DNA of 64,000 nucleotides from Macrostomum lignano (GCA_002269645.1 NIVC01000939.1:487216-551215); one strand, 5' to 3'; counted from the stretch's first letter, positions 370 to 62,877 are shown. The notes: generated from the letters alone by a model not told the origin. Program-made: numbers and translations.

Positions 370-3300
370 ATGTCAAGCAGCGCTGAGCAAGAGAAGCAGC
401 AGCTCATTGCCAGCATTCGCCGGCAGCTCCTGGCGCAGAGTAGCGAGGCCAGTGCAACTTTTATTGGGGAATTTTTCGCCAATCAGCGCAGCGCTTCGGG
501 CTGGCGTCAGGCGCTGGCTGAGCTGTTCGCCAATGCTGACGAGGCGGCTGTCAGCGACCGACACTCGCTGCCGACTCTGCAGCTGCGGCTCAGCGAGGCT
601 GCCGACTGCCTGGTGGTCGCCTGCGCCGAGGCTGCTGGGTTCACGTCGGCTGATGTGCGGGCCGTCTGCGCTCTGGGCAGCTCTGGGAAACCGCCCGTCT
701 GCGGACTCTGGAGAGGCTTCGGCTTCAGGTGAGGCTGGAATGGTAGCTTAGGTGAGGCTGGAATGCTAGCTCAGGTGAGGCTGGAATTCTAGCTCAGGTG
801 AGGCTGGAATGCTAGCTCAGGTGAGGCTGGAATTCTAGCTCAGGTGAGGCTGGAATGCTAGCTCAGGTGACGCTGGAATGCTAGCTCAGGTGATGTTAAA
901 ATGGTAGCTCAGGTGAGGCTGGAATTCTAGCTAGGGTGAGGCTGGAATGCTAGCTCAGGTGAGGCTGGAATTCTAGCTCAGGTGAGGCTGGAATGCTAGC
1001 TCAGGTGAGGCTGGAATGCTAGCTCAGGTGAGGCTGGAATGCTAGCTCAGGTGAGGCTGGAATGCTAGCTCAGGTGAGGCTGGAATGCTAGCTCAGGTGA
1101 GGCTGGAATGCTAGCTCAGGTGAGGCTGGAATGCTAGCTCAGGTGAGGCTGGAATTCTAGCTCAGGTGAGGCTGGAATTCTAGCTCAGGTGAGGCTGGAA
1201 TTCTAGCTCAGGTGAGGCTGGAATTCTAGCTCAGGTGAGGCTGGAATTCTAGCTCAGGTGAGGCTGGAATTCTAGCTCAGGTGAGGCTGGAATGCTAGCT
1301 CAGGTGAGGCTGGAATTCTAGCTCAGGTGAGGCTGGAATTCTAGCTCAGGTGAGGCTGGAATTCTAGCTCAGGTGAGGCTGGAATTCTAGCTCAGGTGAG
1401 GCTGGAATTCTAGCTCAGGTGAGGCTGGAATTCTAGCTCAGGTGAGGCTGGAATGCTAGCTCAGGTGAGGCTGGAATTCTAGCTCAGGTGAGGCTGGAAT
1501 GCTAGCTCAGATAAAGCTGAAATAGTAGCTCATGTGATGCTGGGATCAGTGATGAGGCTCAATGATAGCTCAGGTGAAGCTTAGGTGAGTCTGGTGTCAG
1601 CGATGAGGCAGATAATCACCCTCACCCGCCTAGGTCAGTGCTGGAGGCGTCGCACTGCCCCGAGATTCACTCAAACGGGTTTCACTTCGGGTTTGAGTTG
1701 GACAGCCAGCAGCCGCTGTCCTGCCTGCTGCCCGTCTGGCTGGGCGTCTCCAGCCGATGGGGCCGACAGATCGGTGACTTGGACGACTGCGGCGTCATAA
1801 TAGTTCTGCCGTTGCGTCCGGAGGTGAGAGGGGGGACTGAGACTGCCACTTGTAATGCGTGTCCCGTTACCTTTAATTATTTTGTGCCGAAGAATTCGAC
1901 TCCTAAGGGCTACAGACTTTCTGTAAAAACTCACCGTTTAATGGTGTGAGCGTTTCATTAAGCTAATTATTAGCTAGAGATTTATCGATCGCAGTCAATT
2001 TTGCTATTTATTTAGGTAAAGTAGATAAATAATCGCTGGAGGGCGAGGCGACATTGTCCCACAACCAGCAGTGAGGCAATTCTTGATGCTGCCAATACAA
2101 GCGTGCGGATGCTGCACACAGGCGCTCACACTGGAAGCCTTGGGGTTGTTAGCCATAACGTTTGTGCTCCTGCTGTTGAACAGCTAAAGTGTTGAACACC
2201 TGCTTGTTCACCCAGGTGCAGGCCGCCCTGCTGCACTCCGGCGGCCTCGCCTCCGCGGTAGACCCGCGTTGGTTGCTATGCGCCTCCCGTCTCCGCCGCC
2301 TGGTTGTCAAGGACGCCGCCGCCGGTGTCTATCAGTCGTACGAGCTCCGGTTGTTAAGCAACGGTTGTGAGGCCGTCATCGATCGGCGGACGCGTGATTT
2401 TTGTGACGTCGAATTGAAGCCGACCGGCAGCGAGCGCTGGGTTTTCGTTGACGGCGGCGGCGGCGACCTGCAGCTGGCGGTTCCGGCTGAACCGGAGGTG
2501 GTGGCCGCTGCGGACGGCGGCTTCTTTGTTGCCCCGTCGGCTGGGCTGCCGCTGCTGCGGGGCTGCGGCCTGCGGTTCCTGGCCTGCTCGCCCGCCGGCC
2601 TGCTGCGCGTGGACTCCGCCAGGTGAGCCGCTTGAGCTTGTAACAGAGCTCGGATGAGACGATGCCCGTTGAAAACGATACCGTGACAAGAATATAGTGA
2701 CTCTTATAGAGTTGTAGAATCGTAAAAAGGGTGGCGAGAGTGGTCCTAACAATCGTTTTTTGGCGCTTAACTTTCTACTAACTCAGTAGGCTAGTAAGAG
2801 TGCTTTAAACCTCAAATACGACTCTACGGCCCTAGAGTCGTTTTACCGTCGCCCAAGAGTCACCGCAGTGGCACCAGAGTCGTTTCAGAGTGATTCTTGG
2901 GCGACTCTTTGGCGACTTGTACCGTGACATTTCGTCGTTTTAGAGTTGTCTCTTACCTTTCCTATTTTACCTGTTATTTGCGACGACTCTCGGGCACTTC
3001 TTGGCCTAGGTACCGTTTTCCTCGGGATAATATTTAAATAAGGACTTTAGTTATTCGTTACTCATTAAATTATTTAAAGGTTAAGGATGAGATTCTGGCC
3101 AATCAATAAGCAGCGCCAATTTATTCTCAGTCTCAGCTGTTAAAAATCCTCAAATTCGAGTCGAGACAAACCGGGGATGAAGGACTCTGGAAGACAGCGA
3201 CCGCAACTGATGCTACTTATTTCTGAGTAGTATATAAAATAATAAAAAAATCGGGAACTTGTAAGCTAGGAAATGCTTATTTTTTAATGAGATTCCAGCT

Positions 3301-6300: not shown

Positions 6301-6783
6301 GCGTCAGACTGGCCGCTGTTGGGGAGCGGGCGGAGCTCCGAGACACTGTGAGTGTCTGCTGTGAGACTGTGAGTGTCTGCTATGAGACTGGGTGTCTGCT
6401 GTGAGACTGTGAGTGTCTGCTGTGAGACTGTGAGTGTCTGCTGTGAGACTGAGTATCTGCTGTGAGACTGTGAGTGTCTGCTATGAGACTGGGTGTCTGC
6501 TGTGAGACTGTGAGTGTCTGCTGTGAGACTGTGAGTGTCTGCTGTGAGACTGAGTATCTTCTGTGAGACTGTAAGTGTCTGCTGGGAGACTGAGTGTCTG
6601 CTGGGAAACTGAGTTTCTGCTGTGAGACTGAGTCTGCTGGGAGACTGTGAGTGTCTGCTGGGAGACTGAGTGTCTGCTGTGAGACCGAGTGTCTGCTGGA
6701 CATAGTTACTCTTACATATTTGTGTCTATTATTTGCAGATTCCAAGCAACAGCGCGCTGGACCCGAGAGTGGAGGCTTTCTGA
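370..6783 (+). CDS. Sacsin/NO VEIN-like protein with N-terminal divergent GHKL (HSP90-like) ATPase domain; 5 exons, 1311 aa
   Basis: Exons 370-728, 1634-1823, 2216-2622, 3413-6347 and 6739-6783 (stop TGA 6781-6783). All introns are GT..AG with consistent phase; total 3936 nt. Joining exons 1 and 2 rebuilds ELFANADEA...GFTSADVRAVCALGSSGK...GLWRGFGFR|SVLEASHCPEIHSNGFHFGF. This matches the sacsin/NOV-type pattern ELIQNADD...GF...IRALC.VG.STK...GEKGIGFKSVF...PEIHSNGFHF.F (family motif knowledge, no database search). An AG at about 315 could indicate an additional upstream exon. Confidence 0.8.
727..1585 (+). repeat. 23-bp minisatellite (CAGGTGAGGCTGGAATGCTAGCT)n, about 37 units, starting at the intron 1 donor
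   Basis: GTGAGG recurs at 729 and 752 (period 23). The first unit supplies the real donor. Confidence 0.95.
2665..3026. mobile_element. Degenerate palindromic MITE-like element in intron 3
   Basis: Imperfect terminal inverted repeats (CCCGTTGAAAACGATACC...CAAGAA versus TTCTTG...GGTACCGTTTTCCTCGGG). Central inverted pair GTCGCCCAAGAGTCAC (2848-2863) and GTGATTCTTGGGCGAC (2890-2905) with 1 mismatch. No clean TSD. Confidence 0.55.
6340..6700 (+). repeat. 21/19-bp minisatellite (GAGACTGTGAGTGTCTGCTGT)n at the intron 4 donor
   Basis: The array begins at the exon 4 end. The first GTGAGT (6348) is the phase-consistent donor. Confidence 0.93.
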
Positions 6784-10126: not shown

Positions 10127-10990
10127 ATGTCCGGCCGCAAGATCCTGATCCCCCTGGACGGCTCCCAGCACGCCGAGGCTGCCTACCAGTGGTACCTGGA
10201 CAACATCCGCCGGGACGGTGACTCGCTGGTGATCGCGCACATCCTGGAGCCGCCATCCCTGCCGTCCTTCTCGCTGAAGAGCGGCTTCAACGTGCCGACT
10301 GAGGAATGGCGCAACATCATCCTGGAGAGCGGCAAGAAGGCCAAGGCTCTGGAGGAGGACGTCTCCGTCCGGGCGATGCAGACTCACCTGAAGGTGCCGG
10401 AATCCGGGACTTCGGGATCCGGGACTTCTGGAATCCGGGATTTTGGGAATCCAAGACTTCAAGAATCTGGGATTTCAGGAATCCAGGACTTCTGCGACTT
10501 GCGACTTGCGAATCTGCTACTTCTGAAACTCGGGTCTTTAGGAATCAAGGATTTTCGGAACCTTGGATTTTGGGGAGATCTGGGACTCGACTTCCGGGAT
10601 GTTGGACTCAAAATTCCGGGATCTGGGGCTCGAAATTCCGGGATCTAGGACTCGGCCTTCCAGGATCTGGGAATCAGGGCATTCTGAAATCACAGGATCT
10701 GGGATTCGGGGCCTCAGTATCCCTCACCGCGCCACCCCCCTCAGATGGAGTTCGTCGCCGAGCCCAGCAAGCGGCCGGGCGAGGCCCTGGTGGACATCGC
10801 CTGGCGCACCGGCTGCAACATGGTTGTCATGGGAACGCGCGGTCTCGGCGACGTGAAGCGCGCTTTCCTGGGCTCGGTGTCGGACTACGTGCTGCACAAC
10901 AGCCGCCTGGCCGTCACCATTGTGCCCGTGAAGCTGCGCGACAGCCAGGGCGAACGGCGCCCGAGCCAGACCGGCGGCGCCGATGCCTGA
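10127..10990 (+). CDS. Universal stress protein (UspA-like), 2 exons, 170 aa
   Basis: Exons 10127-10393 and 10745-10990; intron 10394-10744 (GT..CAG, phase 0). N-terminus MSGRKILIPLDGSQHAEAAYQW. The C-terminus VMGTRGLGDVKRAFLGSVSDYVLHNS contains the G-2x-G-9x-GS ATP-binding motif of USPs. Confidence 0.93.
10400..10715 (+). repeat. Degenerate GGGAT/GGAATC-rich tandem array filling the USP intron
   Basis: Recurrent GGGACTTCGGGATCC, GGAATCC and GGGATT motifs from just after the donor. Periodicity has decayed. Confidence 0.65.
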
Positions 10991-14794: not shown

Positions 14795-17700
14795 TCAGTC
14801 CCGCTTGGGTCGTCCGACAGCCGGGACGGCGGACGAGGACGACGAGGAGCGCTGGCGCTGCCTGCCCGCCATGTTGAAGCCCACGGCCTGCTCGGCCGCC
14901 TTCTGCGTCACGGTCACGTACAGCGGGCAACCGATCTGGGGCGGGGGTTGAGAATAGTATGGGATTCAGATTGAGCAGTGCCAATGGTATGGGATTCAGG
15001 TTGAGCAGTGCCAATGGTATGGGATTCAGATTGAGCAGTGCTAATGGTATGGGATTCAGGTTGAGCAGTGCTAATGGTATGGGATTCAGATTGAGCAGTG
15101 CTAATGGTATGGGATTCAGGTTGAGCAGTGCTAATGGTATGGGATTCAGGTTGAGCAGTGCCAATGGTATGGGATTCAGATTGAGCAGTGCTAATGGTAT
15201 GGGATTCAGGTTGAGCAGTGCTAATGGTATGGGATTCAGTTTGAGCAGTGCTAATGGTATGGGATTCAGATTGAGCAGTGCTAATGGGATGGGATTCAGA
15301 TTGAGCAGTGCTAATGGGATGGGATTCAGATTGAGCAGTGCTAATGGTATGGGATTCAGGTTGAGCAGTGCTAATGGTATGGGATTCAGGTTGAGCAGTG
15401 CTAATGGTATGGGATTCAGATTGAGCAGTGCTAATGGGATGGGATTCAGGTTGAGCAGTGCCAATGGGATGGGATTCAGTTTGAGCAGTGCTAATGGTAT
15501 GGGATTCAGATTGAGCAGTGCTAATGGTATGGGATTCAGGTTGAGCAGTGCCAATGGGATGGGATTCAGTTTGAGCAGTGCTAATGGTATGGGATTCAGG
15601 TTGAGCAGTGCTAATGGTATGGGATTCAGATTGAGCAGTGCTCATATTTGGATTGAAATGACGATCAGGCTGCATCAAGGGCGATTGTCGGGAGGCATCA
15701 GGGCGACTGTCCCTCAGTGTTGATGTTGGAGTCAGAAAGCAGTTCCAGCAGTCGGTGAAGTGCAATGTATTTTTCCACTGACAGGTCCAAGTCACACCAA
15801 ACCAACCAAGGTTTACACAAGTTCAACAATCCCAGACGCATCTATAAAGTGCAAAAGATCTAGCAATCTCCCCCACCATGTCCGCCCCGTCTGCTGCCTG
15901 TCAACCTCAGCAGCAGCGGGCAAAACCTGCGCCATCCAGCCCGGCCAGATGCGGCCCAATATTCGACTGCAGCGTCCGCAGCGAGCAGAATTAGCGGGCC
16001 AAAAATATCCCATAGTCCCATAGAAGTAGAGCCTGAGGAAAAGGACACTTGAAAAAAATCAGACAAAAAAGGAAGATCGAGGAGGGCGAGAAAAGCCAGG
16101 AAAGAGAGAGACGGCGAGGCCTGCGCCGAAAATCTGCGCATCTCCCGGGCGCAGCCGAATCTCCTGCCGCATGCGAGCCGGAGCCGCCAGAGACCGAGGC
16201 AGGCAGGACGACCCCCCCCCAGCCAGCCGTGAATGTACGGCCTCATTGAAATTCAGGCCTGCCCCTCCCCTGGGTACAGAATTCAGAATTAGCCATGCAT
16301 TGATGAGGCCGCGCCCAGGAAAGTCTTGCAAAAAAACTGCACAGCCACAGGGGACCCCCGCAGTGCTGTGACAGCCCAGTTCAAAATCCATACCGCACTT
16401 TGACCCCACCTAAGCTAAACCAAGATCTGCATGCTTGTGTTGGCTCAGGGCAAACAGAACAGCAACAATCTCTAGGCATAGCGCCCCTAACAGCTGGACC
16501 TATGCGATTGGCCAATACTACGCTTGATAGCTTTAGGCATTGTACTCTTCTGAAAGCCTATTACCCTCAAATTGCCGCACTGATGACCCAATCCCAGCCG
16601 CAATGACCCCAATCCCAGCCTCACTGACCCCAATCCCAGCCATAATGACCCCAATCCCAGCCGCAATGACCCCAATCCCAGCCTCACTGACCCCAATCCC
16701 AGCCATAATGACCCCAATCCCAGCCTCACTGACCCCAATCCCAGCCTCACTGACCCCAATCCCAGCCGCAATGACCCCAATCCCAGCCTCACTGACCCCA
16801 ATCCCAGCCATAATGACCCCAATCCCAGCCGCAATGACCCCAATCCCAGCCTCACTGACCCCAATCCCAGCCTCACTGACCCAATCCCAGCTACACTGAC
16901 CCCAATCCCAGCTACACTGACCCCAATCCCAGCTACACTGACCCCAATCCCAGCCACACTCACCCCAATCCCAGCAACACTCACCCCAATCCCAGCCACA
17001 CTCACCCCAATCCCAGCCACACTCACTCCAATCCCAGCCACACTCACCCCAATCCCAGCCACACTGACCCCAACTCCAACCACACTGACCCCAACTCCAA
17101 CCACACTGACCACAATCCCAGCTACACTGACCCCGATCCCAGCCTCACTGACCCCAATACCAGCTACACTGACCCCAATCCCAGCTACACTGACCCCAAT
17201 ACCAGCCTCACTGACCCCAATCCCAGCTACACTGACCCCAATCCCAGCCACACTGACCCCAACTCCAAGCACACTGACCCCAACTCCAACCACACTGACC
17301 CCAACTCCAAGCACACTGACCCCAACTCCAAGCACACTGACCCCAATCCCAGCTACACTGACCACAATCCCAGCTACACTGACCCCAATCCCAGCCATAA
17401 TGACCCCAATCCCAGCGACACTGACCCCAACTCCAACCACAGTGACCCCAATCCCAGCCCATGCCAGCGACTCGCACCTTATCCCACAGCAGATTGGCAA
17501 AGGCATCGATATGGTGGCCCAGGTCCAAGTAGTTGCCACTGTGCCTGACGTAGCACCAGGTGATGAGGGCCACGATGAGGACCCACACCATCCAGGTGCA
17601 CAGGTTGGCCAGCGGGTCCAGGCCGATGAAGTCCAAGAAGCCGGCCAGGAAGTAGCAGAGCAGCAGGGCGCTGAACAGCACAGACAGGGTGCGCATGCCA

Positions 17701-47434: not shown

Positions 47435-48030
47435 AGCTAAGCACCTAAGCATCTAAGCACCTAAGTACCTAAGCATCTAAGCACCTAAGCACCTAAGTAC
47501 CTAAGTACCTAAGTACCTAAGTACCTAAGCATCTAAGCACCTAAGCACCTAAGTACCTAAGTACCTAAGCATCTAAGCACCTAAGCACCTAAGTACCTAA
47601 GTACCTAAGTACCTAAGTTACCTAAGTACTTAAGCATCTAAGCACCTAAGCACCTAAGTACCTAAGCATCTAAGCACCTAAGCACCTAAGTACCTAAGTA
47701 CCTAAGCATCTAAGCACCTAAGCACCTAAGTACCTAAGTACCTAAGTACCTAAGTTACCTAAGTACTTAAGCATCTAAGCACCTAAGCACCTAAGTACCT
47801 AAGTACCTAAGCACCTAAGTACCAGAGTACCTAAGTACCTGAGCACCTAAGCACCTAATCACCTAAGCACCTAAGTACCTAAGCACCTAAGTACCTAAGT
47901 ACCTAAGTAACTAAGTACCTAAGTACCTAAGCAACTGAGCACCTAAGCACCTAAGCACCGAAGCACCTAAGCACCTAAGCACCTAAGCACTTACATTTAA
48001 GTACATAAGTACCTAAGTACGAGTACATAA
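47435..48030. repeat. 8-bp microsatellite-like array (CCTAAGYA)n
   Basis: Mixed CCTAAGCA, CCTAAGTA and TCTAAGCA units. Confidence 0.93.
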
Positions 48031-48404
48031 GTAACTATGTAAAAGACGTTATCGCGCGTACTCGCAAAACACAACCAGCTCGCACATGTAGCTTAGATAA
48101 ACTCCATGTCAACCAGTACTTGTTTGACGTCACGGCAGAAGTTTTGTTTGATGTCACCAGGGTGGGATTCTGGTGGGGGGAGGGCAGAGTGCCCCGTTGC
48201 CGTCTACAAAGATAAAAAATGGCGACGATCCGCGCTCAGAGGCTGTGCAGAGGCGGCTCTGGCTGTCCGGGACTTTCAAGCAGATTCAGCCGCAGCCGAT
48301 CCTCTTAGCTCGGCCTGTGTGGCTGCAAAATATCAATTAGGCGAGCACCGGAAATTACTCGGGCCGAGCAGGCCCGGCAGGCCGGCGGAGAAAGTTTGCT
48401 CGGG

Positions 48405-49499
48405 TAAGCTCAGATGTGCTCAGACATGCTCATATATGCTCAGATATGCTCAGATATGCTCAGATATGCTCAGATGTGCCCAGATGTGCTCAGATATGCT
48501 CAGATGTGCTCAGATATGCTCAGATGTGCTCAGATATGCTCAGATGTGCTCAGATATGCTCAGATATGCTGAGATATGCTGAGATATGCTCAGATATGCT
48601 CAGGTATGCTCAGATATGCTCAGATATGCTCAGATGTGCTCAGATTTGCTCAGATGTGCTCAGATATGCTCAGATGTGCTCAGATTTGCTCAGATGTGCT
48701 CAGATATGCTCAGATATGCTCCGATTTGCTCAGATGTGCTCAGGTATGCTCAGATGTGCTCAGATATGCTCAGGTATGCTCAGGTATGCTCAGACATGCT
48801 CAGGTATGCTCAGATGTGCTCAGATTTGCTCAGGTATGCTCAGGTATGCTCAGATATGCTCAGGTGTGCTCAGGTGTGCTCAGATGTGCCCAGATTTGCT
48901 CAGATGTGCTCAGATATGCTCAGATATGCTCAGATATGCTCAGATATGCTCAGATGTGCTCAGGTATGCTCAGATATGCTCAGGTGTGCTCAGGTGTGCT
49001 CAGATGTGCCCAGATTTGCTCAGATGTGCCCAGATATGCTCAGATATGCTCAGGTGTGCTCAGATATGCTCAGATATGCTCAGGTATGCTCAGATATGCT
49101 CAGATATGCTCAGATATGCTCAGATGTGCTCAGATATGCTCAGATGTGCTCAGATATGCTCAGATATGCTCAGATATGCTCAGATATGCTCAGATATGCT
49201 CAGATATGCTCAGACGTGCTCAGATATGCTCAGGTATGCTCAGGTATGCTCAGATATGCTCAGGTATGCTCAGATATGCTCAGGTATGCTCAAATATGCT
49301 CAAATATGCTCAGATGTGCTCATATGCTCAGATATGCTCAGGTATGCTCAGGTATGCTCAGACGTGCTCAGATATGCTCAGGTATGCTCAGGTATGCTCA
49401 GATATGCTCAGGTATGCTCAGATATGCTCAGGTATGCTCAAATATGCTCAAATATGCTCAGATGTGCTCATATGCTCAGATATGCTCAGATATGCTCAG
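48405..49499 (+). repeat. 10-bp minisatellite (GCTCAGRTRT)n bounded by GTAAGC and CAG
   Basis: About 110 units starting at GTAAGC (48404) and ending at CAG (49499). Confidence 0.95.
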
Positions 49500-50344: not shown

Positions 50345-51500
50345 AAAAAGCCCCTGGTGCTAAAGCCCCTGTTGCTAAAGCCCCTGGTGCCAAAGCCCCT
50401 GTTGCTAAAGCCATGTTGCTAAAGCCCCTGGTGCTAAAGCCCCTGTTGCTAAAGCCCCTGGTGCTAAAGCCCCTGATGCTAAAGCCCCTGTTGCTAAAGC
50501 CCCTGGTGCCAAAGCCCCTGTTGCTAAAGCCATGTTGCTAAAGCCCCTGGTGCTAAAGCCCCTGTTGCTAAAGCCCCTGGTGCTAAAGCCCCTGATGCTA
50601 AAGCCCCTGGTGCTAAAGCCCCTGGTGCTAAAGCCCCTGATGCTAAAGCCCCTGTTGCTAAAGCCCCTGATGCTAAAGCCCCTGATGCTAAAGCCATGTT
50701 GCTAAAGCCCCTGGTGCTAAAGCCCCTGATGCTAAAGCCCCTGATGCTAAAGCCCCTGTTGCTAAAGCCCCTGGTGCTAAAGCCCCTGGTGCTAAAGCCC
50801 CTGTTGCTAAAGCCCCTGATGCTAAAGCCCCTGTTGCTAAAGCCCCTGATGCTAAAGCCCCTGGTGCTAAAGCCCCTGTTGCTAAAGCCCCTGATGCTAA
50901 TGCTCCTGGTGCTAAAGCTCCTGGTGCTAAAGCCCTTGGTGCTAAAGCCATGTTGCTAAAGCCCCTGTTGCTAAAGCCCCTGGTGCTAAAGCCATGTTGC
51001 TAAAGCCCCTGGTGCTAAAGCCCCTGGTGCTAAAGCCCCTGGTGCTAAAGCCCCTGTTGCTAAAGCCCCTGTTGCTAAAGCCCCTGGTGCTAAAGCCCCT
51101 GTTGCTAAAGCCCCTGTTGCTAAAGCCCCTGTTGCTAAAGCCCCTGTTGCTAAAGCCCCTGTTGCTAAAGCCCCTGTTGCTAAAGCCCCTGTTGCTAAAG
51201 CCCCTGTTGCTAAAGCCCCTGGTGCTAAAGCCCCTGATGCTAAAGCTCCTGGTGCTAAAGCTCCTGGTGCTAAAGCCCCTGTTGCTAAAGCCCCTGTTGC
51301 TAAAGCCCCTGTTGCTAAAGCCCCTGTTGCTAAAGCCCCTGTTGCTAAAGCCCCTGGTGCTAAAGCTCCGATTCTAAAGCCCCCGGTGCTAAAGCCCCCG
51401 GTGCTAAAGCCCTTGTTGCTAATGCCCCTGGTGCTAAAACCCCTCGTGCTAAAGAACCGGGTGCTAAAGCTCCTGATGCTAAAGCTCCTGGTGCTGAAGA
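50345..51500. repeat. 15-bp minisatellite (GCTAAAGCCCCTGKT)n
   Basis: About 75 units, decaying at the right end. Confidence 0.95.
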
Positions 51501-52303
51501 ACCTAGTGCTAAAGAACCTTGCTAAAGTGCTAAAGTGCTAAAGGTGCTAAAGTATGATTGAGTTGGAATTCTGCAGCTTGTGAATCTCTACTCAAAGATT
51601 TCGGTCACAGCTTCAAGTAGCAGTCAAAACAGCTGCTGTCATCAGGTCAGGCTTGCGGACCGAAATGCCAGCCGTATTGGTCTGTTAGCAAGCTTTCACT
51701 CGCGGGTACGTTCACGGGTGACTTGAGAGCTGTACGCTTAATGACAATGAATGCTATTATTGTAGATTAAAGTACATTTTACGAGCTACCATGTCTCTCT
51801 TTGAGCTTTGCACCCTGATAAAGTATTTTGAGCAACATATTGCTTTGATAAAATAGTAAAACAGCCCTTTCTAAATGCTTTTCTGGCCTCAACGCTGCCA
51901 TGAGCAAATGGTGCGGTTATGAAGCAACAGTTTACGAGTACAGAGCGGCATAAAATTCTACCTGTGCAGACTGTCCGCCCGCCTCACACTGAATTTCTAA
52001 TTCGTCTTTGTGTATGACTCTTCATTTAGCCTGTCAGTCTTCCAAGCCCCAAACCTGAAGACCAGCCTACGACCGCAGGCGTACAGAAAGGTCCGTACTG
52101 GAGCGAGGAGCTTTCACTAACTGTACACCAGCGCAGAAAACTGAGTGTGCACAGCAAACCATGGACTGGAATCTACCCCCCCCCCCGACCCCTACATTAT
52201 CTAAGAGTCTAGAAAGTCGTGACCTCGAACAAAAGCAAATAGAAAAGCTCTCTGAAAGAAAGGCAGCACAAGAGAGCACAAATCAAGGTGAAAGACGGCA
52301 ATA

Positions 52304-53923
52304 ATGCAGCGACTGTCTGATCTGCTCAGCCAGCAGCAGCCAGGAACTCTGGCAACACTTGCGGCCACGACAGCCGCTGCAGCCGGCACCCTGTGGCTTG
52401 TCAGGGCCTGGTCGACCTCAGGCAGCCGTCAGAAACCTCCTCTCCCCCCTGGACCTCGCGGATGGCCGCTCCTGGGCTCCCTGCCCAACATGGATCCGAA
52501 AAGGTCGCACGAGTCTGTGCTGGAGCTCTGCAAGACGTTCGGCCCGATCATCTCCTACAGGCTCGGCTCCCAGCTCTTCATCGTCATCAACGACTACGAC
52601 TTGGCCAAGGAGCTTCTGGACGATGAAAATTTCACTGGGCGCTCGCGGTCGGTGGTGATCCAACGGCAGACTGGCGGCTGCGGCCTACTGTTCAGCGAGG
52701 GCTCGCTCTGGAAGCAGCACCGGCGACTGGCGCTGAAGACCCTGCGGGACTTCGGCTTCGCTAAAGACCGATCTGTGGAGATGGTCAACATCCAGCTGGA
52801 CGACATCCTGACTGACCTGCGCGACGCCAGCGAGTCAGCGCGTCCGTTGAACATCCTGGACGCATTCACCGAGGCCACCAACGCCGTCATCGCCACGCTG
52901 ACTCTGGGCAGACAGTTCAGGCGTGGCGACCCGGAGCTCGAATTCGTGCGAACAGCTGCCCGCCGCCTGTTCACGGGCAGGCCGCTGCAGAACCTGCCGT
53001 TTCTGTTCCCCTGGACCGACTACATCGTGCGGCTGTTCCCGACCTCGAACGAGCTGAACCTCGTCAACATGGAGATTCTCGAGTTCATCCAGCGCCAGGT
53101 GCAGGAGCGCCTGAAACTCATGGGTGCCGACATAGAAGGATTTGAGCCCGAGTGCCTCTGCGATGTGTACATCAAAGAGAGGCAGAAGGCCGAGGCAGCT
53201 GGAGACTTCGAAAGCTTCAAGGACATGCAGGTTTGTGCTTTCAGTCCATTTGAACTATGCAGTCTCTCGTATCTCTCAAAAAAATCCAACATCCTGCAGG
53301 TTCTCCGCGTGGTGATGGAGCTGTTCATGGCCGGCACGGACACCACGGCCCGCAGTCTGGAGTGGCTGCTGCTCTACATGACGTTCGAGCAGGACTGGCA
53401 ATCCCGGGTGCAAGCCGAACTTGACAGAGTCATTGACGGCGAGCGCAGGCCGTCCATGAGAGACAGGGACCAGCTGCCGCTCACCTGCGCCGTCATCGAA
53501 GAGACTTACCGCATCGTGTCGCTGACCCCGTTTGCGCTGTTCCACCGCGCGACGCAGCAGGACACAGTCTTTCACGGCTACAGCTTCCCGACGGATGCGC
53601 TGGTTTTCCCGTTCACCTACGGCATGTCGCGAGATCCCAAGGTGTGGGCTCGACCGAATGAGTTTCACCCGGAGCACTTCCTGCGGCCGGACGGCAGCTT
53701 CGCAGGTTCCGGCAAGAACATCCCGTTCTCCATGGGCCGTCGAGTGTGCGTTGGCGAGTCGCTGGGTCGCATGGAGGTCTTCCTTATCTTCTCAGCCGTA
53801 ATGAAGCTGTTCAAAGTTCGCATGGCGGATGAGTATCTGAGCAAGCGGGAGGACATCCTGCGCGGCAGTCTGGGCATTTTGAGAATTCCCGGCGACTACC
53901 GGCTGCTGTTTGAGGCCCGCTAG
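52304..53923 (+). CDS. Cytochrome P450, CYP2 clan; probable 69-nt intron 53231-53299; 516 aa spliced
   Basis: N-terminal anchor and PPGPRGWPLLG, C-helix WKQHR, I-helix AGTDTT, K-helix ETYR, PEHF, heme motif FSMGRRVCVG. CAG|GTTTGT...CCTGCAG| flanks an AT-richer, in-frame 23-codon insert. Confidence 0.95.
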   Translation: MQRLSDLLSQQQPGTLATLAATTAAAAGTLWLVRAWSTSGSRQKPPLPPGPRGWPLLGSLPNMDPKRSHESVLELCKTFGPIISYRLGSQLFIVINDYDLAKELLDDENFTGRSRSVVIQRQTGGCGLLFSEGSLWKQHRRLALKTLRDFGFAKDRSVEMVNIQLDDILTDLRDASESARPLNILDAFTEATNAVIATLTLGRQFRRGDPELEFVRTAARRLFTGRPLQNLPFLFPWTDYIVRLFPTSNELNLVNMEILEFIQRQVQERLKLMGADIEGFEPECLCDVYIKERQKAEAAGDFESFKDMQVCAFSPFELCSLSYLSKKSNILQVLRVVMELFMAGTDTTARSLEWLLLYMTFEQDWQSRVQAELDRVIDGERRPSMRDRDQLPLTCAVIEETYRIVSLTPFALFHRATQQDTVFHGYSFPTDALVFPFTYGMSRDPKVWARPNEFHPEHFLRPDGSFAGSGKNIPFSMGRRVCVGESLGRMEVFLIFSAVMKLFKVRMADEYLSKREDILRGSLGILRIPGDYRLLFEAR

Positions 53924-55149
53924 GTCTGGCGACGTTCTTCGCTGGGCGAGCCGACGTGACGAATGCTGGCTCTGCCAGTCTCGAATTTATTGACTGAACT
54001 CAGATTTTCAATAAGTATTATTGCGCAACTCAATGACTCCACGAGTGCAGGTATGTGTGTACCTGGGTTAGGTTGGATCTATTAAACTTTTGCGAGCTTC
54101 ATTGTGTTTAATTTGGCCATTTTGCACGAGCTGCGGATAAATTAGCCAAGCTAGCTAAACCAGTAGCACACCTAAAAGCGCATTGTGTAACTCCAAAACT
54201 ATTGACAAAATATACTAGTAAGCATGCATTGTTAAAAATACAAGAGATAAATCAGATAATCTTTTTTCTGACAACATCTCCGTTTTACAAGAAATATTAC
54301 TGCGGCGAGGGGGGCAGTGCTCAGCGGCATGCCAGCGAGGGCCAACGCCCAAGGCCCAGAGTGTCATGGATAAATGAATAAACAGGAGATATTTTATACT
54401 TAGCCTCCACTTTTCCCCGTGTGTGCATATGCGTGCTCAGGGGTCAGCGGAATACACATGTCTGCTTGTCTTCTCTGTCGGCTGTCACTTTGCTCCCCCC
54501 TTTGAGAACTACATGCATGTGTACTTATTATTTACTGCCACGCGAGAAATGTCTAGAAAGATAGCAGAGTGAAACGTAGCACAAAGGCAGGGGGGCCTTG
54601 TTAGCAGAAGCCTCCCCGAGCAGGCAGGGAAGCTGGGCTCATGGGCAATCGATCGCTGCTGCATCGCCACTAATCAGGACCGGGGCATCTGATACTTCGC
54701 GTAATTGCGGCTTGTCTCCGGTCTGTGAGCAGCTCCGCTCAACAGCCCGCCCACTGGAGCAGCTGCCTGGTGCTCGGAGGGTAAAAGCGACTTTGTCGCA
54801 GCTGAGGGCGGCGGAGGCGCTTTTTTACCTCCCTCCCTCTGCATTTCGAGGAGCCGACTTCGGCTCTCGGAAGCAGCTAATTGGGGCCGCGGCAGTCGGG
54901 GCTGCTGCAGCGAAGCGCCCGAGAGTCAGAGATTTAATTGACAGCGAGTACTTTTGAACCGCTCCAGACAGCGGCTGCAACATTGCGGATTTTTCTGGGT
55001 TTTTTTCTGGGCCACTTGCATATTGCTAGTTTAGCCAGAGTTGGCAGGTCAGCATGCAGATGAACCAGCTGATTGCGCCACTCCGGAAGCTAAATAGGAC
55101 AGCTTATTAATTTCAGTTCTGTTCACAAAGCTGAGGTACATTGCTGTGC

Positions 55150-55690
55150 CCCAGCTGCACCCACCTCCCCATTGTTTCTTCCCCAGTTATGCGCGGCTCA
55201 GCCTGATTGGCTGCCCCTCTCTGGCTGCTCCCCAGCTGCACTCACCTCCTCCTTCTTTCTGCCACAGTTATGCGCGGCTCAGCCTGATTGGCTGCCCCTC
55301 TCTGGCTGCTCCCCAGCTGCACCCACCTCCTCCTTCTTTCTGCCCCAGTTATGCGCGGCTCAGCCTGATTGGCTGCCCCTCTCTGGCTGCTCCCCAGCTG
55401 CACCCACCTCCTCCTTCTTTCTGCCACAATTATGCGCGGCTCAGCCTGATTGGCTGCCCCTCTCTGGCTGCTCCACAGCTGCACCCACCTCCCCATTGTT
55501 TCTTCCCCAGTTATGCGCGGCTCAGCCTGATTGGCTGCTTCTCTCTGGCTGCTCCCCAGCTGCACCCACCTCCTCATTCTTTCTGCCCCAGTTATGCGCG
55601 GCTCAGCCTGATTGGCTGCCCCTCTCTGGCTGCTCCCCAGCTGCACTCACCTCCCCATTGTTTCTTCCCCAGTTATGCACGGCCCAGCCT
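55150..55690 (+). repeat. 81-bp minisatellite, about 6.5 units
   Basis: Unit CCCCAGTTATGCGCGGCTCAGCCTGATTGGCTGCCCCTCTCTGGCTGCTCCCCAGCTGCACCCACCTCC..., seen as a 27-aa period in the ORF track. Starts shortly after GAG|GTACAT (55136). Confidence 0.93.
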
Positions 55691-56694
55691 AATTAGCTGC
55701 TCCTCTCTGCTCTACCCCCTTCTCTATCCCTGTGCATTGTCGTGTTTTTCTATCATAGAGAATCATTGCTACAACAACATAATAATAAATGAAGGGCATC
55801 AGACCATTCTATACCCGTAGATAGAGCACCACACGAGGTTGAATAAATAAGTTATTCTTGGCCATTTAGCAGTTATTAAGTCTCCAGCTGAGTTGGGGAA
55901 GTTCAGGTAGACTCGTAGCGATGGGAAATCTAATTGCAAATCGGTCCCTGCGAAGTTCCGAAGCTGTTCGAGTCGACCTCTATTTTATTAATCCTAAGCC
56001 AGATCCCCAAGCCCGGGATTTGTCCTAAGCCAGATCAGACTAACCTAACCTAAGTCAGACTGGAGCCTGAGCTCTCTCGGCAGATTTTAGGATTTGTCAA
56101 CCGATGCCGGGCATGCAGAGAGGGAGGCGGTGACGGTGAAATTAGCAGCCTCCGATGAGGCATCCTATCAATGCTAGTGCCGTCTGCAGCGCTCTGACAA
56201 CATGGCTGGATATAGAAATTTTTTTTATAACTCAACTCAACAGATGCAAATGAGACATCTGAGCAGAATGATTGCAAGCACGGGGGAATCTGCTTCAGCC
56301 TGGCAAATCTGAGCAGGACCCAAAAAATATGAATTTGTTTTTAGCCCCACAGCAGGTCTCCTGCGGGCACAGAAGGCAGTGATTAAAAATGAAGAAGACA
56401 GCTCGGTGTTAATTATGATTTCCAGTGGGACCGAGCCGCTGATGCTGCGGATCAAGCAGAGATTCCATGATTATCATGCAAGACTTTGAACGCCAGCCGG
56501 TAATTACAGGATTCCGGCTTTGAGCACTCCCTGTTGCAAGCGACACCTGCAAATGGCACCTTCGCGCTGCAGGCCGTTGCTATTTTAGCTAACTTAGCGC
56601 TGTATATTGAATATTTTTATTCTTTACAGAAAATATTTTTAGCCGAGGCAAGCAACACTTCAGGCTTGAACTCCTACTTTAAAATGAGAGGGCC

Positions 56695-57425
56695 TCGTAT
56701 CTGTGCAATGCTAGCCGTCCCCAATGTACAGAGATGGACCTTCTATCTGTGCAGTGCTAGCCGTCCCCAATGTACAGAGATGGGCCTCCTATCTGTGCAG
56801 TGCTAGCCGTCCCCAATGTACAGAGATGGACCTCCTATCTGTGCAGTGCTAGCCGTCCCCAATGTACAGAGATGGACCTTCTATCTGTGCAGTGCTAGCC
56901 GTCCCCAATGTACAGAGATGGACCTTCTATCTGTGCAGTGCTAGCCGTCCCCAATGTACAGAGATGGACCTTCTATCTGTGCAGTGCTAGCCGTCCCCAA
57001 TGTACAGAGATGGACCTTCTATCTGTGCAGTGCTAGCCGTCCCCAATGTACAAGAAATGGACCTTCTATCTGTGCAGTGCTAGCCGTCCCCAATGTACAG
57101 AGATGGACCTTCTATCTGTGCAGTGCTAGCCGTCCCCAATGTACAGAGATGGACCTTCTATCTGTGCAGTGCTAGCCGTCCCCAATGTACAGAGATGGAC
57201 CTTCTATCTGTGCAGTGCTAGCCGTCCCCAATGTACAGAGATGGACCTTCTATCTGTGCAGTGCTAGCCGTCCCCAATGTACAGAGATGGACCTTCTATC
57301 TGTGCAGTGCTAGCCGTCCCCAATGTACAGAGATGGACCTTCTATCTGTGCAGTGCTAGCCGTCCCCAATGTACAGAGATGGACCTCCTATCTCTGCAAT
57401 GCCAACCGTCCCCAATGTACAGAGA
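56695..57425. repeat. 46-bp minisatellite, about 16 units
   Basis: CCGTCCCC at 56761 and 56807 (period 46). Confidence 0.95.
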
Positions 57426-58114
57426 TGGGTCCATTTGAAGAAGGAATAGTATGGACTTGGAGATTTTTGGTAGTTGGTTGCCACAGGTAAGCTTTTCCTT
57501 GTATTCCTAAAAGCAATATGCATAGGTTATCAGAGCATAGAATAAAATTATGAAGGCCTCACGATTTTGCTTGTAGAAATTGTTGGTAAGTGTATGGACA
57601 ACGATGAGCTGAGCATGGAGTTCTAATAAAAATAGCATCTGGACTGGAGCTAGACAAATTATTTTTGACGAATTCGCCACAGGGGGGGGGCGAAAAGCTC
57701 TACGCTCGTATTCGTAAAAGCGTGCATTTGTTGGGTCGGCTACAAATATTTATGATACCTGGAAAGCATTAGAAAATGTCATGCTGACAATCTAGTTGTC
57801 ACAGTCGTCACAGCCACGCCCTACAGTAGTACCTGCTTTGGAAACAACCTTGCACAGAGAATTGTGCAGCGGAAAGATTGATAAGACTATGATCGTCAAA
57901 AAGTGCTTGTTTTTAAAGGCTTTGGGATTCCTCTCCAGATGCTAATTTTAGAACTCCATGCTACATTGGTACCTGAGGCGAGACAAATGCGATGGCTACG
58001 CCACAACCTCTTTATCTAATTGGCTTTTATCTAACTTGAACAGTCAAAAGAGCGGACATGAACACAGCTCTTGATGCCCTTCGCGAGTCCTGCACTGGCT
58101 TCATTGTGAACACC

Positions 58115-58598: not shown

Positions 58599-59317
58599 GT
58601 GAACACCGGATTTCTTTTATTAACGAAGCAATAACCAAAACTGGATAATTTCGATGACATCTCGAATAACAATCAAAATTATCGAACTATTTTATTTCGT
58701 TCAATAGTACTTTATAAAAAATAAGTTGATTTATTACAAAAAGGTTTGCATAGTGATTACCTGAGATAAATGATTAATCATGCGAGAAAAGCAGGCTGAG
58801 CAGGAGCGGCAATGGAGGTTCAGCACTTTTATCATAATTTCCCATGTATTGTGTGTTCTTATGGGTTCATAAGCTACTCATACCAGTAGCACCTGTTCCA
58901 GTTTGCTTCAGTTTGGTGAATCTGGAACACGCTTTGTGTCGCTTTGCTGACTATGCGCTCGCACAAGTAGCTGAACCAATAGAAATATTAATTTACTTCA
59001 CTTTGCGATCTAACGGCCCGCTCAGGTGTCCTGGACCTCCCTTGAGCTTTTCGGCGGCGTCCCCGGAGGGCTGCGGTCGTCCCTGGCACTCTGGGAGCTT
59101 CTAGGATTGGTGCCCAGTGGGCTGCTGTCTGGAAAAGATTCGCTGATGTGCCCGCTGTCCTCCGCCGGGACGAGAATCGCCACGCGGTTAGCAGCGTCGC
59201 CGCGTCGGCTGCCTGACCGACCTGGGGTTGCGTTTGGGTGGAGCTTCTGTTGTGGGTTTTATGAGTTGCAAAAAGACTCAAACTCTCTGAAACTGAGACT
59301 CAGACTGAAGATTGAGG

Positions 59318-59615
59318 CCCCATACCGGAAGCCAGACCCATACCGGAAGCCAGGCCCAAACCGGAAGCCAGGCCTATACCGGAAGCCAGGCCCATACCGG
59401 AAGCCAGGCCTATACCGGAAGCTAGCCCCATACCGGAAGCCAGCCCCATACCGGAAGCCAGTCCCATACCGGAAGCCAGCCCCATACCGGAAGCCAGGCC
59501 CATACCGGAAGCCAGGCCCATACCGGAAGCCAGCCCCATACCGGAAGCCAGTCCCATACCGGAAGCCAGCCCCATACCGGAAGCCAGTCTCATACCGGAA
59601 GCCAGCCCCATACCA
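59318..59615. repeat. 18-bp minisatellite (CCCATACCGGAAGCCAGS)n
   Basis: About 16 units. The minus strand begins at GTATGG (59613). Confidence 0.93.
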
Positions 59616-59877
59616 GCCCCTGACAAACGCACTCTGTATATCCTGAGCGGTGCCACTTGCAGCTTCAGCTTGCGCAGCAGATGTCACTGGCTGACTTTCA
59701 TTATCCTGGGCCGAATCGCGTCCGCTGTCGGCCAATCTCGGGTCAAGAATTGCAGCTTCCCGGTTCTGAGGGTGCTGATTAACTGGAAATTCAGAAAACA
59801 CCATGCCGTGGCGACGGTCACTCTCAGTTCCGTTCTGTACATCGCTTGGTTGATGCGTCTGAAACAGTATTTTGTGT

Positions 59878-60078
59878 TCGATTCCTGCTTCTGACTCTCG
59901 CACTGAAGTATCTTGGGGTTCGATTCCTGCATCTGACTCTCGCACTGAAATATCTTGGGGGTTCGATTCCTGCATCTGACTCTCGCACTGAAATATCTTG
60001 GGGGTTCGATTCCTGCATCTGACTCTCGCACTGAAATATCTTGGGGGTTCGATTCCTGCATCTGACTCTCGCACTGAA
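59878..60078. repeat. 43-bp minisatellite containing GGTTCGATTCC, about 4.5 units
   Basis: CGCACTGAA at 59941 and 59984 (period 43). Confidence 0.9.
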
Positions 60079-61444
60079 GTACCCAGTGGGACAACTAAGT
60101 GGGGCGTACAGTGGGCGGTGTGCGCCCTCGCGACCGCCTGTGAGGGCAGTCAGTAAATATTTTTATTTTCACTTTAAAATGAAGTATGATCTGATTTTTC
60201 AATGAGAAATTGTGATTTTGTAATCGTAATACTTTAATTCGCCTTAATAAGTACGATCTTCGATCTTTGAAGCATTTCCAACGCCCATAGTCAATCAGCT
60301 AACGAATTGACTGCTGCAAATATCGGCTCGGCTCAGCAGAGTCCATATAGACGCTCTCACCACTGCCTCCTCGTCGCTTTGCTCATCTGACATGTTGACA
60401 AGGGGCAGGTGGAAATGATGGCGTCTTGCTTGGCAGTTCAGCGTCTCGGTTGTATGGAATTACTTAGCGGCTAAAACTGATTAGCTTTTCTGTAAAAGGC
60501 TTAGAATTCAAACTGATTTTAAACTTGGAACTAGGTATATAGACCACTAAGTATATTCTAAGATATATACTCGAAAAAAGAAATTTTTTGCTTGTCAGTG
60601 GTAATTTTAGGCTGGGTAGAGAGAGGGGTGCAAGCTACCAATCGCAGTCCTTTGCTACCGGACGTACGAGGGGCAAAGTGCAGCTGCATATCTATTTTTT
60701 ACATGTACGAGCGATGCACACTCGCTGGAAAATAACGTACGCCTTGTGACTGTGCAGACTTGCGCAGGCTGCCCAACGTCTCTCGCCATTTATGAAATAC
60801 AGGGTTTTATCTTTTACAAGGTATGACAGAAAGGACTAAGCAAACTAAATTGCCAAACCCTCGAAACCAAGACAGCTTCAGCAACTCAAGAATCCTTTTA
60901 ACTCTTCTTAAACTCCCACTGGAGACTCTGCGTTATTGGTGTCGACACCCTGGCAACCAGCCTATAAGAGACTCTGGGGCCGCGTCACGAGGTGATAAAA
61001 AATTATTTCGAACTGAGAAACGCATTGAAAATTTGAGTATTTAAACAAATTTTACATTAACTTTTTTTACATGCAACTTCCTCAACTCCGCGAAGATAAC
61101 AGACTCCACTGGAGGACTCCATTCGATAACAATTTTGCGCGTGTTGCAGAAAATCAAGCAAAGTTCTCGTAGGCTATTCATTTAAGAGCACAGCACAAAA
61201 TTCACGATAAATAAATAATAAATCAAGTGAGTCGCGTGCCCTGGACTGAATTGCACCGCAAAAAGTATATTCGAATAATTTTGGTAAAGTAATTGCCGTG
61301 GCTTACTTTAGAGCAATAAGGACGTGATGGTCCAAAATCAATGGAGATTAGATAAGACCATCGTTTCTCTGAATAAAAGTCGCCTTAAACTCGAATAATT
61401 ATCTAATGTAGAGATTAATAAGCCTCTCCGTTACCCAGTCCAAC

Positions 61445-62877
61445 CAGCGAGTCCCTCAGTCCTCAACCTCCAGCGAGTTCCTCAGTCCTCAGCCTCCAGC
61501 GAGTCCCTCAGTCCTCAGTCCTCAACCTCCAGCGAGTCCCTCAGTCCTCAGTCCTCAACCTCCAGCGAGTCCCTCAGTCCTCAGTCCTCAACCTCCAGCG
61601 AGTCCCTCAGTCCTCAGCCTCCAGCGAGTCCCTCAGTCCTCAGCCTCCAGCGAGTCCCTCAGTCCTCAGCCTCCAGCGAGTCCCTCAGTCCTCAGCCTCC
61701 AGCGAGTCCCTCAGTCCACAGCCTCCAGCGAGTCCCTCAGTCCTCAGCCTCCAGCGAGTCCCTCAGTCCTCAGCCTCCAGCGAGTCCCTCAGTCCTCAGC
61801 CTCCAGCGAGTCCTCAGTCCTCAGCCTCCAGCGAGTCCCTCAGTCCCTCAGTCCTCAGCCTCCAGCGAGTCCCTCAGTCCTCAACTTCCAGCGAGTCCTT
61901 CAGTCCTCAGTCCTCAGCCTCCAGCGAGTCCCTCAGTCCTCAGCCTCCAGCGAGTCCCTCAGTCCTCAGCCTCCAGCGAGTCCCTCAGTCCTCAGCCTCC
62001 AGCGAGTCCCTCAGTCATCAACCCTCAGTCCTCAACCTCCAGCGAGTCCTTCAGTCCTCAACCTCCAGCGAGTCCCTCAGTCCTCAGTCCTCAACCTCCA
62101 GCGAGTCCTTCAGTCCTCAACCTCCAGCGAGTCCTTCAGTCCTCAACCTCCAGCGAGTCCTTCAGTCCTCAACCTCCAGCGAGTCCCTCAGTCCTCAGCC
62201 TCCAGCGAGTCCCTCAGTCCTCAGCCTCCAGCGAGTCCCTCAGTCCTCAGCCTCCAGCGAGTCCCTCAGTCCTCAGCCTCCAGCGAGTCCCTCAGTCCTC
62301 AGCCTCCAGCGAGTCCTCAGTCCTCAGCCTCCAGCGAGTCCCTCAGTCCCTCAGTCCTCAGCCTCCAGCGAGTCCCTCAGTCCTCAACTTCCAGCGAGTC
62401 CTTCAGTCCTCAGTCCTCAGCCTCCAGCGAGTCCCTCAGTCCTCAGCCTCCAGCGAGTCCCTCAGTCCTCAGCCTCCAGCGAGTCCCTCAGTCCTCAGCC
62501 TCCAGCGAGTCCCTCAGTCCTCAGCCTCCAGCGAGTCCCTCAGTCCTCAGCCTCCAGCGAGTCCCTCAGTCCTCAGCCTCCAGCGAGTCCCTCAGTCCTC
62601 AGCCTCCAGCGAGTCCCTCAGTCCTCAGCCTCCAGCGAGTCCCTCAGTCATCAACCCTCAGTCCTCAACCTCCAGCGAGTCCTTCAGTCCTCAACCTCCA
62701 GCGAGTCCCTCAGTCCTCAGTCCTCAACCTCCAGCGAGTCCTTCAGTCCTCAACCTCCAGCGAGTCCTTCAGTCCTCAACCTCCAGCGAGTCCTTCAGTC
62801 CTCAACCTCCAGCGAGTCCTTTAGTCCTCAACCTCCAGCGAGTCCTTCAGTCCTCAACCTCCAGCGAATCCCTCAGT
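61445..62877. repeat. 26-bp minisatellite (TCCTCAGCCTCCAGCGAGTCCCTCAG)n with higher-order duplication
   Basis: About 1.4 kb. Variant blocks at about 61800-61915 recur at about 62300-62420. Confidence 0.95.

Follow-up and report, generated by a model that had tools for sequence, protein, structure and literature searches.

The final 64 kb of Macrostomum lignano contig NIVC01000939.1 (bases 487216-551215, assembly Mlig_3_7, GCA_002269645.1), to which we refer as the window, contains five genes in which most long introns carry tandem arrays, and this locus raises the question why such arrays so often begin or stop at a splice site. Of the 13 array-bearing introns, 10 have an array edge no more than 20 nt from a splice site, against 5.2 expected when the arrays of each intron are placed uniformly at random within that intron (P = 0.0015). 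This abutment is a real local pattern of unproven generality, and we consider it probable that it arose in ordinary, already existing introns, at least one of them ancient, which were inflated by hypervariable minisatellites seeded locally and bounded by the splice-site cores.

Tandem arrays at splice sites in a five-gene window

Exon-intron models were built by hand from open reading frames (ORFs), GC content at third codon positions (GC3), GT-AG sites and homolog alignments, followed by an exact-sequence look-up against GenBank proteins. The spliced products of the five models turned out to be identical at every residue to PAA74568.1-PAA74572.1:

plus strand, sacsin-like gene, 1326 aa, PAA74568.1; annotated as 5'-partial, 15 codons precede the ATG
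plus strand, universal stress protein (USP) gene, 170 aa, PAA74569.1
minus strand, atlastin gene, 603 aa, PAA74570.1
minus strand, PDE gene (GAF-GAF-PDE, collinear with human PDE5A), 803 aa, PAA74571.1
plus strand, cytochrome P450 gene, 516 aa, PAA74572.1

Because the hand-spliced models equal transcript-based GenBank proteins, all 19 intron boundaries are verified, and since the GenBank annotation was built on a genome-guided transcriptome (PMC5730564), they have RNA support. An alternative sacsin-like model using an array-internal donor at 6401 also yields 1326 aa, but differs from the annotated protein and was rejected. The 385-aa ORF at 18370-19527 on the minus strand is 100% identical to M. 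lignano atlastin BOX15_Mlig015865g1.

All 19 introns are of the GT-AG type, 10 of them with GTGAG-type donors. In transcript order, they measure 905, 392, 790 and 391 nt (sacsin-like), 351 nt (USP), 409 and 2542 nt (atlastin), 2260, 78, 749, 309, 2143, 916, 589, 309, 142, 424 and 376 nt (PDE) and 69 nt (P450). Sixteen exceed 300 nt; the remaining three, at 53231-53299 (69 nt), 33316-33393 (78 nt) and 26915-27056 (142 nt), lack arrays and show the uninflated form of an intron in M. lignano. Tandem Repeats Finder (TRF) detected arrays with periods of 2-43 nt in 13 of the 16 long introns, three of these arrays being strictly microsatellites (periods of 2-4 nt). After removal of the arrays the introns measure 41-1585 nt, which is comparable with the 69-790 nt of introns that lack arrays. 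The array-bearing introns are as follows:

729-1633, plus strand, sacsin-like intron 1, 905 nt; 23-mer array at 725-1543 (TCAGGTGAGGCTGGAATGCTAGC on the sense strand)
6348-6738, plus strand, sacsin-like intron 4, 391 nt; 19-21-mer array at 6345-6698, opening at the used donor GTGAGT and stopping 40 nt before the acceptor
10394-10744, plus strand, USP intron, 351 nt; 16/32-mer array from 6 nt past the donor, and a second, 22-mer array stopping 72 nt before the acceptor
14936-17477, minus strand, atlastin intron 2, 2542 nt; G-rich 21-mer array at 16587-17459, 18 nt from the donor
18018-18426, minus strand, atlastin intron 1, 409 nt; 34-mer array at 18123-18338 in the middle, separated from the splice sites by 88 and 105 nt, an exception to the pattern
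25826-26201, minus strand, PDE intron 11, 376 nt; 29-mer array with sense CTGAC, 33 and 29 nt from the splice sites
26289-26712, minus strand, PDE intron 10, 424 nt; 43-mer array at 26342-26697 with sense GTGAGT and GTGAGC, from 15 nt past the donor GTCAGT
27365-27673, minus strand, PDE intron 8, 309 nt; short 30-mer array with sense GTGAGT, 111 and 59 nt from the splice sites and thus near neither
27867-28455, minus strand, PDE intron 7, 589 nt; (GA)n-rich array from 12 nt past the donor
28800-29715, minus strand, PDE intron 6, 916 nt; 16-mer array AATCTCTGACCCATCG (sense) at 28819-29414, stopping 19 nt before the acceptor
29807-31949, minus strand, PDE intron 5, 2143 nt; 16-mer array CTGACTCACCCAGTAT (sense) at 29820-31837, 126.6 copies, stopping 13 nt before the acceptor
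32477-33225, minus strand, PDE intron 3, 749 nt, composed of 6 nt, 700 nt of (GACA)n and 43 nt
33550-35809, minus strand, PDE intron 1, 2260 nt; (ATGCAGGG)n array at 35479-35802 from 7 nt past the donor, and a second (ATGCAGGG)n array at 34715-35065

The 10 abutting introns comprise 8 with an array at the donor and 3 with one at the acceptor, atlastin intron 2 being counted at both because an unrelated, C-rich 30-mer array (14953-15642) lies 17 nt from its acceptor. The positional excess persists when the threshold is set to 15, 25 or 30 nt (P = 0.004-0.009) and in a threshold-free statistic, the sum of log distances (P = 0.001), but is not significant for the 13 introns at 10 nt (P = 0.10). 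The signal is carried by introns with 300-1600 nt of free sequence, namely atlastin intron 2 and PDE introns 1, 6 and 7. A first-pass annotation of the window had listed 16 introns above 300 bp among 19, 13 of them with an array, and had stated that each array has its own unit of 2-43 bp, that most start or stop within about 20 nt of a donor or acceptor and that atlastin intron 2 has a different array at either end; the counts were reproduced exactly on the GenBank-verified introns, the unit sizes match the TRF periods, and the positional statement stands against random placement.

At the level of single nucleotides, two arrays contain the used donor. In sacsin-like intron 1 the array opens 4 nt inside the exon, so that its first unit holds the last 4 exon bases together with the donor; the junction reads ...TTCAG/GTGAGGCTGGAATGGTAGCTTAG GTGAGG..., with the slash marking the splice site, and the junction-like CAG/GTGAGG recurs per unit, giving 29 exact copies on the sense strand, of which the annotated mRNA uses the first. 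The unit lacks a yTnAy word on the sense strand and has a poor pyrimidine tract, and recursive splicing at these CAG/GTGAGG units appears unlikely. In sacsin-like intron 4 the used donor GTGAGT opens the first repeat unit. The other donor-side arrays start at +6 or +7 (USP intron, PDE introns 1 and 3) or at +12 to +18 (PDE introns 7 and 10, atlastin intron 2). On the acceptor side, PDE introns 5 and 6 each have a single CTGAC placed plausibly for a branch point, which sits in the last unit, ~22 and ~31 nt from the AG, respectively. The last, partial unit of PDE intron 5 has lost its AG (CCCAGTAT changed to CCCAAACC), which agrees with the requirement for an AG-free zone downstream of the branch point. 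The proposal that arrays were seeded at the splice signals is thus supported in part only, by the donor in the first unit of two introns and the CTGAC in the last unit of two others.

The repeat units are also enriched in splice-like words, with the reservation that the words were chosen after viewing the data and that the sample is small. Units with GT[C/G]AG in either orientation occur in 8/16 intronic but 1/29 non-intronic arrays (Fisher P = 4e-4), and the 8 arrays with GT[A/C/G]AG compare with a mean of 2.8 for shuffled units (P = 0.001). The arrays and words quoted in the first-pass annotation (GTGAGG, GTGAGT, GTGAGC, GTCAGT with G-runs, CTGAC) were all found on the sense strand. Specifically, the array of sacsin-like intron 4 carries GTGAGT and GTGAGA, and the donor-side array of atlastin intron 2 carries GTCAGT with GGG and GGGG runs. 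Runs of GGG are present in three donor-abutting arrays (USP, atlastin intron 2 and PDE intron 1), and motifs of the intronic-enhancer type (G-runs or U1 sites) thus occur on the sense strand within ~70 nt of a splice site.

The orientation of these words tends to follow the side of the intron. In donor-side arrays with GT[C/G]AG the word is on the sense strand in 4/4 cases (3 GTGAG, 1 GTCAG), and in word-bearing arrays nearer the acceptor it is antisense in 3/4, so that the sense strand reads CTGAC. The GC skew of the sense strand is positive in 7/8 donor-abutting and negative in 4/4 acceptor-abutting arrays (P = 0.008). The sense strand of PDE intron 5 contains 102 CTGAC and 96 CTCAC, and its antisense strand 93 GTGAGT. 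As GTGAGT and the branch-like CTCAC are reverse complements, the same word may act at the donor or at the acceptor according to its orientation, and since the acceptor-side array of this intron carries 93 antisense GTGAGT, the strand-polarised coupling originally suggested holds as a tendency tied to the side and not as a rule.

Homeologous copies and the age of the introns

M. lignano is a recent polyploid, and we compared the window with its homeologous copies (L002, L003, L005 and L006). All homeologs have the same arrays, units and splice-site distances, but very different copy numbers. The 21-mer of atlastin intron 2 has 41.6 copies in the window and 81.6 and 54.2 in the homeologs, where the 30-mer of the same intron has 27.8 (L002) and 24 (L003); the 34-mer of atlastin intron 1 has 6.5 copies against about 16. 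In the PDE gene the window and its homeolog have 175 and 62 copies of (GACA)n in intron 3, 126.6 and 33.6 of the 16-mer in intron 5, 37.2 and 6.3 of that in intron 6, and 8.3 and 16.1 of the 43-mer in intron 10, and the 23-mer of sacsin-like intron 1 has 35.6 copies against 13.8+7.1 in L006. Between homeologs, the copy numbers of intronic arrays differ by a factor of up to 3.8 and those of one intergenic array by up to 4.8, intergenic arrays varying in the same way as intronic ones.

The sequence around the arrays is, by contrast, stable. The PDE exons are 99.4% identical between the copies and the array-free introns 94-99%, the latter keeping their length (78/78, 309/312 and 142/142 nt in window and homeolog), whereas 5/8 array-bearing PDE introns differ 1.3- to 3.2-fold in length (749 vs 297, 2143 vs 663, 916 vs 421, 424 vs 766 and 376 vs 493 nt). 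These differences are due to copy number alone because the distances between arrays and splice sites are unchanged. The shared units, fixed boundaries and variable copy numbers therefore identify the arrays as inherited hypervariable minisatellites, or variable number tandem repeats (VNTRs), with internal gain and loss of units and stable flanks. No gradient of unit homogeneity along the arrays, which would be a sign of polar growth, was found. The idea that introns here grow by tandem amplification is borne out, as arrays make up 58% of the intron bases and the length changes in PDE track copy number.

The further idea that introns originate in this way is not supported. Atlastin intron 2 (WDK/IGCP, phase 0) is at exactly the same codon boundary as a 381-nt intron of Lingula anatina (WEQ/VLSP, phase 0), and because it is shared with this brachiopod it is older than its arrays; it is an ancient intron that has grown to 2.5 kb. 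All arrays are older than the homeolog split. Atlastin intron 1 is not shared with Lingula, the closest Lingula intron being 12 codons downstream. Among the atlastin introns, the only ones compared with orthologs, the absence from orthologs that the Rogers model of intron birth by tandem duplication predicts was not seen for intron 2, and there is no duplicated flanking exon segment: the proteins are collinear with their homologs, and the unit of sacsin-like intron 1 repeats no more than 4 to 8 bases that resemble exon sequence.

An all-against-all comparison of units revealed no families except for the two PDE intron 1 arrays and a weak similarity of the PDE intron 5 unit to that of intron 6, and self-BLAST of the window found no dispersed repeats in introns and a single inverted repeat overall. 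Each array thus arose locally, because the units are unrelated and the introns are without dispersed repeats; on the same grounds we rejected a mobile-element or introner origin, there being no element shared between the arrays. A stem bridging the intron by pairing of the two arrays of atlastin intron 2, which share a GGGATT/AATCCC core, was not significant (z = -1.8, 6% of shuffles as good).

Arrays beyond the introns

TRF returned 45 non-redundant arrays of head-to-tail units in the window (periods 2-101 nt, 74-98% matches), which cover 33.8% of it, that is, 58% of intron, 35% of other non-coding and 0.8% of coding bases. The non-intronic control arrays detected by TRF, given without strand, include:

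36605-36926
37686-38108
38871-39521
40115-41359
42963-44653
47437-47990
48397-49499
50347-51514
55149-55709
56698-57428
59317-59614
59876-60078
61444-62879

These 13 large arrays lie within ~26 kb (36605-62879) in which P450 is the sole annotated gene, and include a 1.7-kb array of CTGCCTCTCCT and a 1.4-kb array of a 26-mer. The contig stops 1.1 kb past the last large array, and the repeats may therefore have broken the assembly. GenBank annotates no gene at 36.4-52.3 kb or 53.9-64 kb of the window. Two stop-free stretches on the plus strand, 45566-46885 and 38100-38573, have coding-like GC3 (0.87 and 0.75) and neither a Pfam match nor a GenBank gene; they are probably unannotated genes inside the region treated as intergenic. 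No Rfam matches and no tRNAs were detected in the window. The tetranucleotide (TGTC)n or (ACAG)n is found in one intronic (32520-33219) and two intergenic arrays (38871-39521 and 42688-42724), on opposite strands.

Upstream of atlastin, a 30-mer array at 19584-20302 (L001 9256-9974), C-rich on the sense strand of the gene, stops 27 nt short of the annotated 5' end of the gene in each of its three copies, and arrays therefore also abut gene boundaries other than splice sites, in this case a promoter or sequence preceding a trans-splice site. In the homeolog L002 the region upstream of atlastin is different and has arrays with a 177-nt period. An AT-rich block at 20000-25500 (29-47% GC) contains a 140-nt inverted repeat (21970-22109 and 22437-22576, 95% identity), which is possibly a transposon.

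As a held-out neighbour we used a GDSL lipase gene (L008 1111-4367, minus strand), ~5.3-8.6 kb upstream of window base 1, for which the hand model reproduces the annotated length of 251 aa. The modelled introns measure 430, 1704 and 367 nt, and only one of the three bears an array, the 1.7-kb intron being free of them. The array in the 367-nt intron is a C/T-rich 24-mer in mid-intron, separated from the splice sites by 86 and 118 nt, and degenerate copies extend from it toward both. With this intron added, the positional P is about 0.003. The 10 kb of L008 outside the window hold four array sites of roughly 0.7 kb in total (about 7%), and the window is therefore unusually array-dense and the pattern weaker next door. 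The architecture had been described as intron-specific and window-wide, and this description is not supported: arrays also cover 35% of the other non-coding DNA, one adjoins the 5' end of atlastin, and that of the lipase gene is not near a splice site.

Two further observations concern the PDE gene. In exon 9 (27057-27364, minus strand) an 11-residue stretch differs from its human PDE5A counterpart HDLDHRGVNNSY and presumably departs from the PDE signature, and the M. lignano PDE5-like enzyme may be catalytically divergent. UniProt entry A0A1I8J1Z0, based on the older ML2 assembly, differs from the Mlig_3_7 protein in ~20 residues at the junction of exons 2 and 3 (the two exons spanning 33226-33549), a difference suggestive of a frameshift or of a mis-spliced ML2 gene model.

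Explanations for the abutment and comparison with known systems

In the explanation that we favour, the non-coding DNA of M. lignano would be saturated with tandem arrays, each born by tandem duplication of a short local sequence. Replication slippage or unequal exchange would presumably then add or remove units in the interior of an array and leave its outer edges in place. Arrays born beside a donor would copy the donor itself or the G/T-rich sequence downstream of it, and those born beside an acceptor would copy C-rich sequence along with the branch-point word. Both the donor core (+1 to +6) and the segment between branch point and AG would be under purifying selection, which would limit the arrays and so produce abutment, and near the splice cores only signal-compatible arrays would persist, which together with the inherited sequence may account for the positional and strand bias. 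We infer slippage as the mechanism and selection or nucleation bias, not function, as the cause of the abutment.

Several points weigh against this explanation. Nucleation at uniformly distributed sites, even with boundaries that stay fixed, is not sufficient to predict abutment where an intron has ample free sequence, as in atlastin intron 2 (both ends) and PDE introns 1, 6 and 7, where each case has P ~0.05-0.14. An extra bias must therefore be assumed, be it in nucleation, in the deletion of spacers or in selection, including signal redundancy. One intron holds 29 perfect cryptic donors, which should be harmful but persist in two homeologs. Finally, the sample for the positional test, 13 introns in 5 linked genes, is small.

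The abutment could alternatively reflect geometry and chance, with arrays nucleating anywhere, many ancestral introns being short and the splice-like words arising from post hoc pattern matching; we regard this as unlikely. Part of the closeness is indeed geometric, because five of the 13 introns have <=90 nt of non-array sequence, in which closeness is nearly unavoidable, and the uniform null already yields 5.2/13. The lack of significance at 10 nt, the choice of motifs after looking, the possibility of counting GTGAGT/CTCAC as reverse complements on either side and the absence of the pattern from the held-out lipase gene all point in the same direction. However, the threshold-free P remains at 0.001-0.003 with the held-out intron included, the signal comes from introns that have 300-1600 nt of free sequence, and neither the shuffled units (2.8 vs 8 arrays, P = 0.001) nor the controls (1/29 with GT[C/G]AG) reproduce the motif content.

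A functional role was considered as well. The arrays might be multivalent splicing elements kept by selection, with tandem U1 (GTGAG) or G-run units at the 5' side and branch-point or pyrimidine units at the 3' side, which would recruit splicing factors and help the splice sites of introns lengthened by repeats to pair efficiently. Such a role would agree with the side-dependent motif orientation and GC skew (P = 0.008), with three introns whose arrays begin exactly past donor position +6/+7 and two whose arrays contain the donor itself, and with the likely branch point of PDE introns 5 and 6 inside the last unit. G-triplets downstream of donors are, moreover, established intronic enhancers in vertebrates. 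We nevertheless find a functional role rather improbable, since near-identical homeologs differ up to 3.8-fold in copy number, so that length is unconstrained; 6/19 introns, including 3/16 long ones, are spliced without an array, as is the 1.7-kb intron of the neighbouring lipase gene; three arrays lie away from any splice site; GT[C/G]AG is missing from four of the arrays that abut a donor, (GACA)n, (GA)n, ATGCAGGG and the USP 16/32-mer; and intergenic arrays are equally abundant.

In a broader form, splice signals would be the preferred birthplaces or selected anchors of minisatellites in a strand-polarised architecture, with tandem 5' splice sites and G-runs where introns begin and branch-point and pyrimidine units where they end, brought about by mutation coupled to splicing or transcription, through which introns would grow from their ends, or by multivalent aid to splice-site recognition. 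This form, in which the spliceosome would reliably use the first of dozens of identical donors, strikes us as doubtful.

Intron birth, either by tandem duplication of exonic AGGT segments (the Rogers model) or by repeat expansion as in Cryptococcus, with the arrays as remains, is very improbable. The 23-mer of sacsin-like intron 1 does carry exon-like ...CTCAG/GTGAGG junctions, and repeat expansion has made introns elsewhere (PMC2395259), but atlastin intron 2 is common to Lingula, the proteins are collinear with homologs across the junctions without duplicated coding sequence (PDE vs human PDE5A), the arrays have tens to >100 copies and not two, and all introns are present in all homeologs. 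An assembly artefact, from mis-assembly or erroneous long-read sequence, is hardly credible in spite of the position of the window at a contig end in a repeat-rich assembly, since the same arrays with identical boundaries are found on three independent contigs and only the exact copy numbers are uncertain.

If the bias were genome-wide, it would explain by repeat growth at intron ends why M. lignano introns are about twice as long as those of its congeners (mean 1,114 nt vs 558 and 692 nt in two congeners, PMC10468722), and it would point to an unexplained bias in the sites at which minisatellites are born or survive; otherwise, the finding shrinks to the known repeat richness of this genome, of which simple and tandem repeats constitute 15% (PMC5730564). 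The locus in any case offers natural experiments in splice-site choice, with 29 identical tandem donors of which only the first is used and 102 CTGAC words upstream of one acceptor, and splice-site choice is directly testable because transgenesis is possible in M. lignano. Changes in intron length of up to 3.2-fold between near-identical copies matter for assembly, for the distinction of homeologs and for the design of primers, guides and transgenes.

Both genome studies give genome-wide percentages only and no distribution of repeats within introns or relative to splice sites (PMC5730564, PMC10468722), a full accounting of repeat content being outside the scope of the latter. In the literature searched we found no description of splice-site abutment or of side- or strand-linked composition, which is absence of evidence only. 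What is known there is the repeat richness of M. lignano, intronic minisatellites, as in amphioxus globin introns (PMC3087553) and C. elegans CeRep25B with 75% of its repeats in introns (PMC4039745), and intron gain by tandem duplication or repeat expansion, as in potato RdRp (PMC4974935) and Cryptococcus (PMC2395259); abutment and side-linked strand composition are apparently undescribed.

The genome-wide tandem-repeat richness of M. lignano concerns the same species and the same repeat class and accounts for the presence of arrays everywhere in the window. The organization of the introns resembles the intronic VNTRs of human genes, amphioxus globin and CeRep25B in its head-to-tail, non-coding units, fast copy-number change, stable flanks and occasional splicing-regulatory words. 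Unlike these, the arrays in the window occupy most of the intron bases (58%) and 13/16 long introns, each with a private unit, tend to lie directly against the donor core or branch point, with the strand of their motifs following the side, and in two cases hold a functional donor. As in Rogers-type intron gain, sacsin-like intron 1 has tandem duplicates of an exon-intron junction, and intron 4 of a donor, but in these cases duplication has lengthened an intron already present, and splicing still takes place at the first donor. Introners likewise involve repeat-associated change in intron content, whereas the introns described here have no sequence in common and their arrays are not mobile copies.

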